A stretch of DNA of 63,511 bases, the filler included, from Pelomyxa schiedti (lineage: Eukaryota; Protista; Evosea), in NCBI GenBank assembly GCA_020536535.1. It is 11 parts of 11 records of this genome, joined end to end, with 100 filler letters (N's around TTAATTAATTAA, not from the genome) between each part and the next. Parts side by side here need not be neighbours in the genome. Positions count along the whole stretch, not along the records: positions 3,474 to 20,387 come from JAHLWZ010000166.1; 10 more parts are not named here. One strand, given 5' to 3'. This document shows positions 15,748 through 16,146 of this stretch, in pieces. A model generated the notes under the pieces. That model worked only from the letters and a program-made list of their open reading frames with translations, was not told where the DNA came from and did no database searches. The first letter of the stretch is position 1. Every line of letters starts with the position of its first letter. Position numbers and translations under genes: made by a program.

Positions 15748-16146
15748 TCAAAGCCTCCTTCTGTTGTAATCTCTTTCATTCTGGATGCTGTAAGTCAACT
15801 TTGTGTCTATTTGCATTCCTCCCCTCAATCTATGCCCAAGAACTTAATTGCGCAGTAGCTTATTGTTATTGTTATTGTTGTTGGCACTCAGAAAGAAATT
15901 TTATTTTCTAATGTGATGAAATAGATTGTACCTGAGCAACAAGTGAAGAGTCGACTCCTTCTGAATACCGTAAACGGCAAGAATGCGGCCATCCTCAAGT
16001 TGCTTTCCGCCAAAGATGATCCTCTGTTGATCTACTGGAATGCTTTCCTTGTCTTGAATCTTCTGTTTCACGTTCTCGATGGTGTCAGTGGGCTCGACCT
16101 CGAGTGTTATTGTCTTTCCGGCGAGTGTCTTCACAAATATTTGCAT
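15748..16146 (-). CDS. Divergent ubiquitin variant (76 aa, ends LRGG) plus 22-aa tail
   Basis: Exon 16146-15932, intron 15931-15830, exon 15829-15748; tail [22 protein letters not shown]. Confidence 0.85.

Follow-up and report, generated by a model that had tools for sequence, protein, structure and literature searches.

Ubiquitin is among the most conserved of proteins, so an intact gene whose ubiquitin has changed at many positions, but which keeps the determinants of conjugation, is a natural experiment on constraint. Such a gene lies in record JAHLWZ010000166.1 of the Pelomyxa schiedti assembly GCA_020536535.1, within the window analysed here (the whole stretch of 63,511 nucleotides), and it raises the question of whether this protist carries a second ubiquitin with a specificity of its own, a duplicate in decay, or a paralogue whose constraint has merely been relaxed or changed. 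A preliminary description of the locus had proposed a conjugatable paralogue with altered reader or DUB specificity, and with it a possible second ubiquitin code. The data presented below favor, with moderate confidence, a lineage-specific single-unit ubiquitin paralogue that is translatable, stands beside canonical ubiquitin and is under strongly relaxed or changed constraint.

Structure and product of the variant gene

The variant is encoded on the minus strand, and positions 15748-16146 hold its entire coding region, tail included, in four parts:

15932..16146, minus strand: exon 1, codons M1 to L71 and the first two bases of R72, with all 11 substitutions
15830..15931, minus strand: intron of 102 nt, GT-AG, phase 2, inside codon R72
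15817..15829, minus strand: start of exon 2, the last base of R72 followed by L73, R74, G75 and G76, the processing and activation motif (residues 72-76 of protein P0105)
15748..15816, minus strand: tail of 22 codons (MQIDTKL...RRRL), then TGA

Exon 1 is a 72-codon reading from position 16146, and the spliced model of 98 aa is identical over its full length to the deposited protein P0105 (KAH3766208.1); either exon 1 or this database protein served as the query in searches. Translation of the minus strand from 16146 bore out every substitution listed in the preliminary description and revealed none besides: relative to every canonical unit of the window the variant carries T9A, S20T, S22T, G35S, P38V, L43I, A46G, T55I, D58V, N60G and V70L, and it is canonical at all other residues. 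All seven lysines (K6, K11, K27, K29, K33, K48 and K63) are present and residues 71-76 read LRLRGG, as both the translation and the identity to P0105 confirm, and the next residues are MQI, as they are between canonical units. R42, I44, K48, R72, G75 and G76, on which E1 activation and the essential chains depend (PMC4862753 for all but R72), are unchanged; it is by R72 that the E1 tells ubiquitin from NEDD8. The GT-AG intron reported earlier was recovered intact (15931..15830, phase 2 in codon R72). The earlier account of the unit was therefore right, but it overlooked the 22-codon tail and the TGA past G76, and G76 is not the C-terminus of the encoded protein.

In NCBI, KAH3766208.1 is annotated as "ubiquitin-40S ribosomal protein S27a". 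This name is wrong, because the 22-residue tail contains no cysteine and the 98-aa product matches only PF00240 and PF11976 in Pfam, with no match to a Ribosomal_S27 domain. The tail consists of MQI and the scrambled remainder of a second, truncated ubiquitin unit (AlphaFold pLDDT about 50-60), and from its sequence it is best read as a leftover of the following unit or cap. The variant differs from P. schiedti ubiquitin at 11 positions and from human ubiquitin at 12 (84% identity), and the near-invariance of ubiquitin does not extend to it. When the 76-codon unit was inspected for lesions typical of pseudogenes, the frame was open, the GT-AG ends were intact and there were no indels relative to the canonical units. 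A convergent neighboring gene on the plus strand (14156-15611 of the window, annotated as 389 aa) has its stop about 137 nt from that of the variant gene; a motif resembling an ELMO domain was read in it by eye, with no match in the precomputed Pfam list.

Canonical polyubiquitin genes and the origin of the variant

The features that bear on the origin of the variant are these:

17136..18914, minus strand: canonical polyubiquitin gene directly upstream of the variant, with units u1, u2, u3, u5 and u6
19524..20387, plus strand: second canonical polyubiquitin gene, head-to-head with the first and running off the contig end
16210..16230, minus strand: upstream motif in common with the canonical 5' region (18987-19007) and a candidate for an element of the promoter or 5' UTR

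Read without the sequence that the scaffold repeats (see the assembly section), the true order is u1-intron-u2-intron-u3-u5-intron-u6, a spacer of about 290 nt and the variant gene; the partial 'unit 4' merely repeats the sequence with which unit 3 ends. Polyubiquitin coding regions are usually called intron-free. Here, phase-2 GT-AG introns lie in R72 after u1, u2 and u5 (donors at 18699, 18376 and 17643 on the minus strand), at three of the four canonical junctions, and dual-specific splice sites have been described at the R/G of LRGG in human UBC (PMC10809524). The last canonical unit, u6 (start 17578), ends after L73 (..LVLRL) with a TGA at 17138-17136; since it stops there, without RGG, it is non-conjugatable, and it appears to act solely as a C-terminal cap. 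In the window's haplotype, two deletions in u6, of 2 nt and of 1 nt, put it out of frame beyond residue 66 (17136-17578; allele 16428-16569).

The two canonical genes form inverted arms (18076-18928 and 19510-20387) of about 860 nt that are 97% identical and flank a spacer of about 580 nt; this divergence argues against an amplification chimera as the source of the head-to-head genes. Intron 1 differs between the arms by one 25-nt indel. Unit 1 of the minus-strand gene reads MQIIVK (F4I, TTC to ATC; 18905-18903), its twin at 19524 has F4, and the change may be genuine or may have been introduced by amplification or assembly; apart from it, the canonical units show no amino-acid differences, despite a dS of 0.7-1.6. 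The S20 codon of the unit-1 copies is TCT in one and AGT in the other (18857-18855 and 19581-19583), which are unconnected serine families, and codon 20 of the variant is ACT (Thr), a one-step intermediate between them. In the bases on either side the AGT copy agrees with unit 3, a hint of short-tract gene conversion around codon 20 of unit 1.

The variant is homologous to the canonical gene in its upstream motif, throughout unit 1, in intron 1, across the LRGG-MQI junction and at the 3' end. A scan for the upstream motif returned two matches with none expected by chance; intron 1 of the variant is 70-86% identical to the first introns of canonical polyubiquitin in aligned columns, with 4-11 gap events and an identical donor context; and the homology at the 3' end takes in the final codons, the stop and about 40 nt at the beginning of the 3' UTR. 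By these five shared features, the variant is best explained as a tandem duplicate of the entire adjacent polyubiquitin gene in which one unit was retained. A GC-AG intron leading from the last truncated canonical unit to exon 2 of the variant was considered and rejected, as its donor is poor and both genes share the stop and 3' UTR. A bacterial promoter and terminator scan of the locus was dropped as meaningless for a eukaryote.

Selection on the variant unit

Pairwise Nei-Gojobori comparison of the variant with its nearest canonical units gave a dN/dS of 0.16-0.17 (dS about 0.5, dN about 0.09), and the amino-acid change was found to lie entirely on the variant lineage. A branch codon model was fitted by maximum likelihood under three topologies, in place of three-point estimates of the synonymous branch, which ranged from -0.05 to 1.2 and were unstable, since the units approach saturation and short-tract gene conversion has probably made mosaics of them; a parsimony count of 'unique' synonymous changes was also rejected for its bias towards high omega. 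Omega on the variant branch was 0.56, 0.89 and 1.45 under the three topologies, in no case significantly different from 1 (2dlnL 0.02-0.76), against a background of 0.012 for the canonical units, and a single-omega model that ties the variant to the background was rejected (2dlnL 32-38). The synonymous length of the variant branch was 0.04-0.12 per codon, roughly 0.1 per synonymous site, in agreement with half the intron divergence. Furthermore, the replacements in the variant were not more conservative than simulated neutral ones (P = 0.31), and both the rate and the pattern of replacement on this branch are as expected under neutral change.

A dN/dS near 1 with no orthologue had been named in the preliminary description as the signature of a decaying pseudogene, and, as far as could be tested, this is what was found (omega 0.56-1.45). 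The protein search listed no orthologue closer than canonical ubiquitin (at most 86%) among the best 120 matches, which were ranked by bit score and dominated by multi-unit fragments, so that this ranking, in which the self-match stood 105th, could hide one; close relatives of P. schiedti are also hardly sequenced, which limits such a search. Metagenome scans with two degenerate patterns (variant residues 34-48 and 55-66) gave no match, and the 90%-identity cluster of the variant protein is a singleton. P0070, a metagenomic eukaryotic ubiquitin with I43, was dropped as its contig is unrelated. A eukaryotic ENA metagenome contig, ctg81814l (L002 4001-4342), encodes a ubiquitin of the Pelomyxa-like S22/Q28/A57 type with L43I, R54H and H68Q.

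These results accord with a young unprocessed pseudogene or silent duplicate, which would have become silent or dispensable when it was duplicated or shortly afterwards and would have drifted neutrally since, its open frame, lysines and GG being kept by chance; we consider this explanation possible, though on balance doubtful. The second unit of the variant gene is already destroyed, and the runs found for the locus, four in number, are of DNA type only, since their Logan contigs contain the variant intron and no splice joints. With 11 changes placed at random, all lysines and LRGG were kept with P = 0.15, and in a neutral mutation simulation carried on to 11 replacements 54% of the sequences were stop-free and 8% also retained all lysines and LRGG. 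Retention of these residues is not statistically surprising (P about 0.08-0.15), and the lysines and LRGG alone are therefore no argument for function.

However, the 228-nt variant unit contains no indel and no stop, whereas unconstrained sequence of the same age beside it has many indels: the intron shows 4-11 gap events per 100 nt, the variant's own tail at least 4 indels and a large deletion, and the upstream gene, in its unconstrained cap, indels of 1 and 2 nt that are polymorphic, with a frameshift. Had the unit gathered indels as densely as the tail, it should hold about 4.6 of them (P about 0.01), a rough estimate whose density derives from an AT-rich intron and from a tail unconstrained in both lineages. 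Nor has the variant lost its splice sites or its upstream motif. In addition, the haplotype of runs X2 and X3 differs within the variant coding sequence at 16108 (I13, ATA/ATC) and 15985 (R54, CGC/CGT), both synonymous, with no nonsynonymous polymorphism. Taken together, the indel- and stop-free 228 nt and the synonymous-only polymorphism make pure decay less likely, in spite of a variant-branch omega of about 1, and we prefer the reading of a translatable paralogue under strongly relaxed or changed constraint.

Predicted fold and altered surfaces

The variant retains the beta-grasp ubiquitin fold as judged by its PF00240 match (95 bits, from exon 1), its AlphaFold confidence (pLDDT 93-98 over residues 1-72, low in the tail) and superposition of the model on 1UBQ (TM 0.99, rmsd 0.5 A). 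In the established structure of ubiquitin, S20T, S22T, T55I, D58V and N60G belong to the D58 polar patch, T9A, A46G and V70L, all three conservative, to the rim of the I44 patch, G35S and P38V to the loop after helix 1, and L43I to the core; A46G and N60G fall at turn positions that accept glycine. Five changes are therefore grouped on one known binding surface, the D58 patch, which is predicted to be more hydrophobic, with its acidic and polar character lost. Deep mutational scanning in yeast found R42, I44, K48, G75 and G76 to be sensitive positions (PMC4862753), and none of these five is altered in the variant. The same source reports that most single ubiquitin changes are tolerated in the laboratory, so altered residues need not imply altered specificity.

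The distribution of the substitutions bears on a further alternative, in which the variant would be a neofunctionalized conjugatable paralogue whose remodelled D58 patch, I44 rim and loop 35-38 give it its own readers, its own E2/E3s or resistance to DUBs. We regard this as unlikely; on this view, an omega near 1 would combine positive selection at about 11 sites with constraint elsewhere. Consistent with it are the frame that stayed open while the tail decayed, the clustering of five changes on one binding surface with A46G and N60G at glycine-tolerant turns, and a McDonald-Kreitman-like contrast (fixed, ~13-14 nonsynonymous and 3-5 synonymous; polymorphic, 0 and 2; one-sided P about 0.09). 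The human variant UbKEKS, which has its own targets (PMC7066184), is a precedent. However, none of these tests is significant, no orthologue was found among the matches listed or in the metagenome scans, the annotated genes of the variant's contig include no linked E2, E3 or DUB gene, and the tolerance of ubiquitin to most single changes weakens any argument from the altered residues. Nothing points to a dedicated reader or DUB system for the variant. Of the original proposal, then, the conjugatable part fits the sequence; the "second ubiquitin code" draws its support from the location of the substitutions and is best described as possible.

Assembly, alleles and scaffold artefacts

The P. schiedti assembly was produced from amplified single cells with SPAdes (largest k = 121), and its contigs were then linked by P_RNA_scaffolder on the basis of paired RNA-seq reads (PMC8887013). 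Three 100-N gaps in the polyubiquitin region (16570-16669, 17280-17379 and 17976-18075) each fall within ubiquitin units, and the pieces flanking them overlap by exactly 121 nt: the end of the piece 18076.. equals the start of the piece 17975..; the piece ..17380 ends in the sequence with which both 17279.. and 16569.. begin; and the last 121 nt of the piece 16670-17279 equal 16107-15987. These are false gaps between overlapping contigs. The pieces that flank the gap at 4429-4528 show no 121-nt overlap. One of the pieces concerned is an additional feature of the locus:

16670..17279, minus strand: allelic bubble branch, 99% identical to 15987-16569, with exact 121-nt overlaps at both ends

This piece differs from 15987-16569 by 6 mismatches and 5 indels. 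Because its overlaps equal the largest k of SPAdes, the piece, including the partial copy of the variant at 16829..16670, is an alternative allele that the scaffolder placed in series, and runs X2 and X3 carry the variants of this allele. A second variant gene at 16829..16670, within 16670-17279, was considered and is ruled out by the exact overlaps and the matching X2/X3 alleles. Since the scaffold repeats sequence at the 121-nt overlaps, the annotated 391-aa polyubiquitin and 103-aa 'variant b' models are likewise scaffold artefacts.

Although the assembly stems from amplified single cells joined by RNA read pairs, and three joins at this locus are false gaps with one allele set in tandem, it is very improbable that whole-genome amplification of single cells, the assembly or the scaffolding created the variant gene itself, because the complete gene sits in one unbroken contig piece (4529-16569) and both haplotypes share all 11 substitutions over the part covered. 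Its locus also recurs in Logan contigs from four public runs, which belong to a single sample and study and probably underlie the assembly; X1 among them is identical to the window across 15600-16519, so that an assembly chimera is excluded.

A proposed course of events

The paralogue that we prefer would have arisen by tandem duplication of the polyubiquitin gene, promoter-proximal region and 3' UTR included, with loss of the whole stretch that runs from the beginning of unit 2 through the truncated final unit. Transcription may proceed from the retained 5' region, with splicing at the conserved R72 intron and translation into a 98-aa precursor. Since the LRGG|MQI junction is unchanged, the precursor would be cut after G76 by the enzymes that process polyubiquitin, releasing a 76-aa variant and a 22-aa junk peptide. 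The 76-aa variant could then be activated and serve as chain donor and acceptor; it is conjugatable in principle, because it keeps R42, I44, K48, R72, G75-G76 and all lysines. After the duplication, the near-absolute constraint on ubiquitin would have been lifted (omega about 1 against 0.012) while the frame stayed open.

A bolder extension of this scheme, which we think rather improbable, is that P. schiedti has a second conjugatable ubiquitin, with a hydrophobic D58 patch and a retuned I44 rim, which some of the readers, E3s or DUBs distinguish from the canonical form; if true, this would amount to an orthogonal ubiquitin signal that evolved naturally out of a tandem duplicate. Should the variant be made and conjugated, it would be a protist counterpart of human UbKEKS and the natural equivalent of ubiquitin variants made by engineering, and would reveal which surfaces can change first. 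Should it be silent, it would gauge the speed at which ubiquitin decays, at about 14 nonsynonymous changes per ~0.1 synonymous substitutions per site.

Comparison with known systems

Among known systems, canonical polyubiquitin genes evolve in concert (Sharp and Li 1987, as cited in PMC4862753 and PMC10809524). The variant keeps the first unit, the intron, the unit junction and the 3' end of such a gene; however, it consists of one unit, which has escaped the purifying selection that holds the neighboring units. Like the ubiquitin-eS31 (RPS27A) fusion, it has an N-terminal ubiquitin unit with a C-terminal extension that would be removed after G76, but its extension consists of 22 decayed ubiquitin residues, with neither the eS31 zinc ribbon nor a cysteine. 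NEDD8/Rub1 and other ubiquitin-like modifiers share with it the beta-grasp fold and the GG C-terminus; unlike NEDD8/Rub1, the variant is 84% identical to human ubiquitin and keeps R72. Its sequence marks it as a recent derivative of ubiquitin and not as a member of an old ubiquitin-like family.

The closest precedent is human UbKEKS, the product of UBB pseudogene 4 (UBBP4), which has four changes (Q2K, K33E, Q49K and N60S), loses one lysine and is supported by RNA, proteomic, conjugation and knockout evidence (PMC7066184). Both are polyubiquitin duplicates outside the canonical set, with a few substitutions, one of them at N60, and with the C-terminal GG kept, and genes of this type are easily mis-annotated because they lie outside the canonical gene set. 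The Pelomyxa variant, described here at the level of its gene, has in contrast 11 changes and keeps all lysines. By its origin and sequence features, the gene fits the kind of ubiquitin variant that UbKEKS exemplifies.
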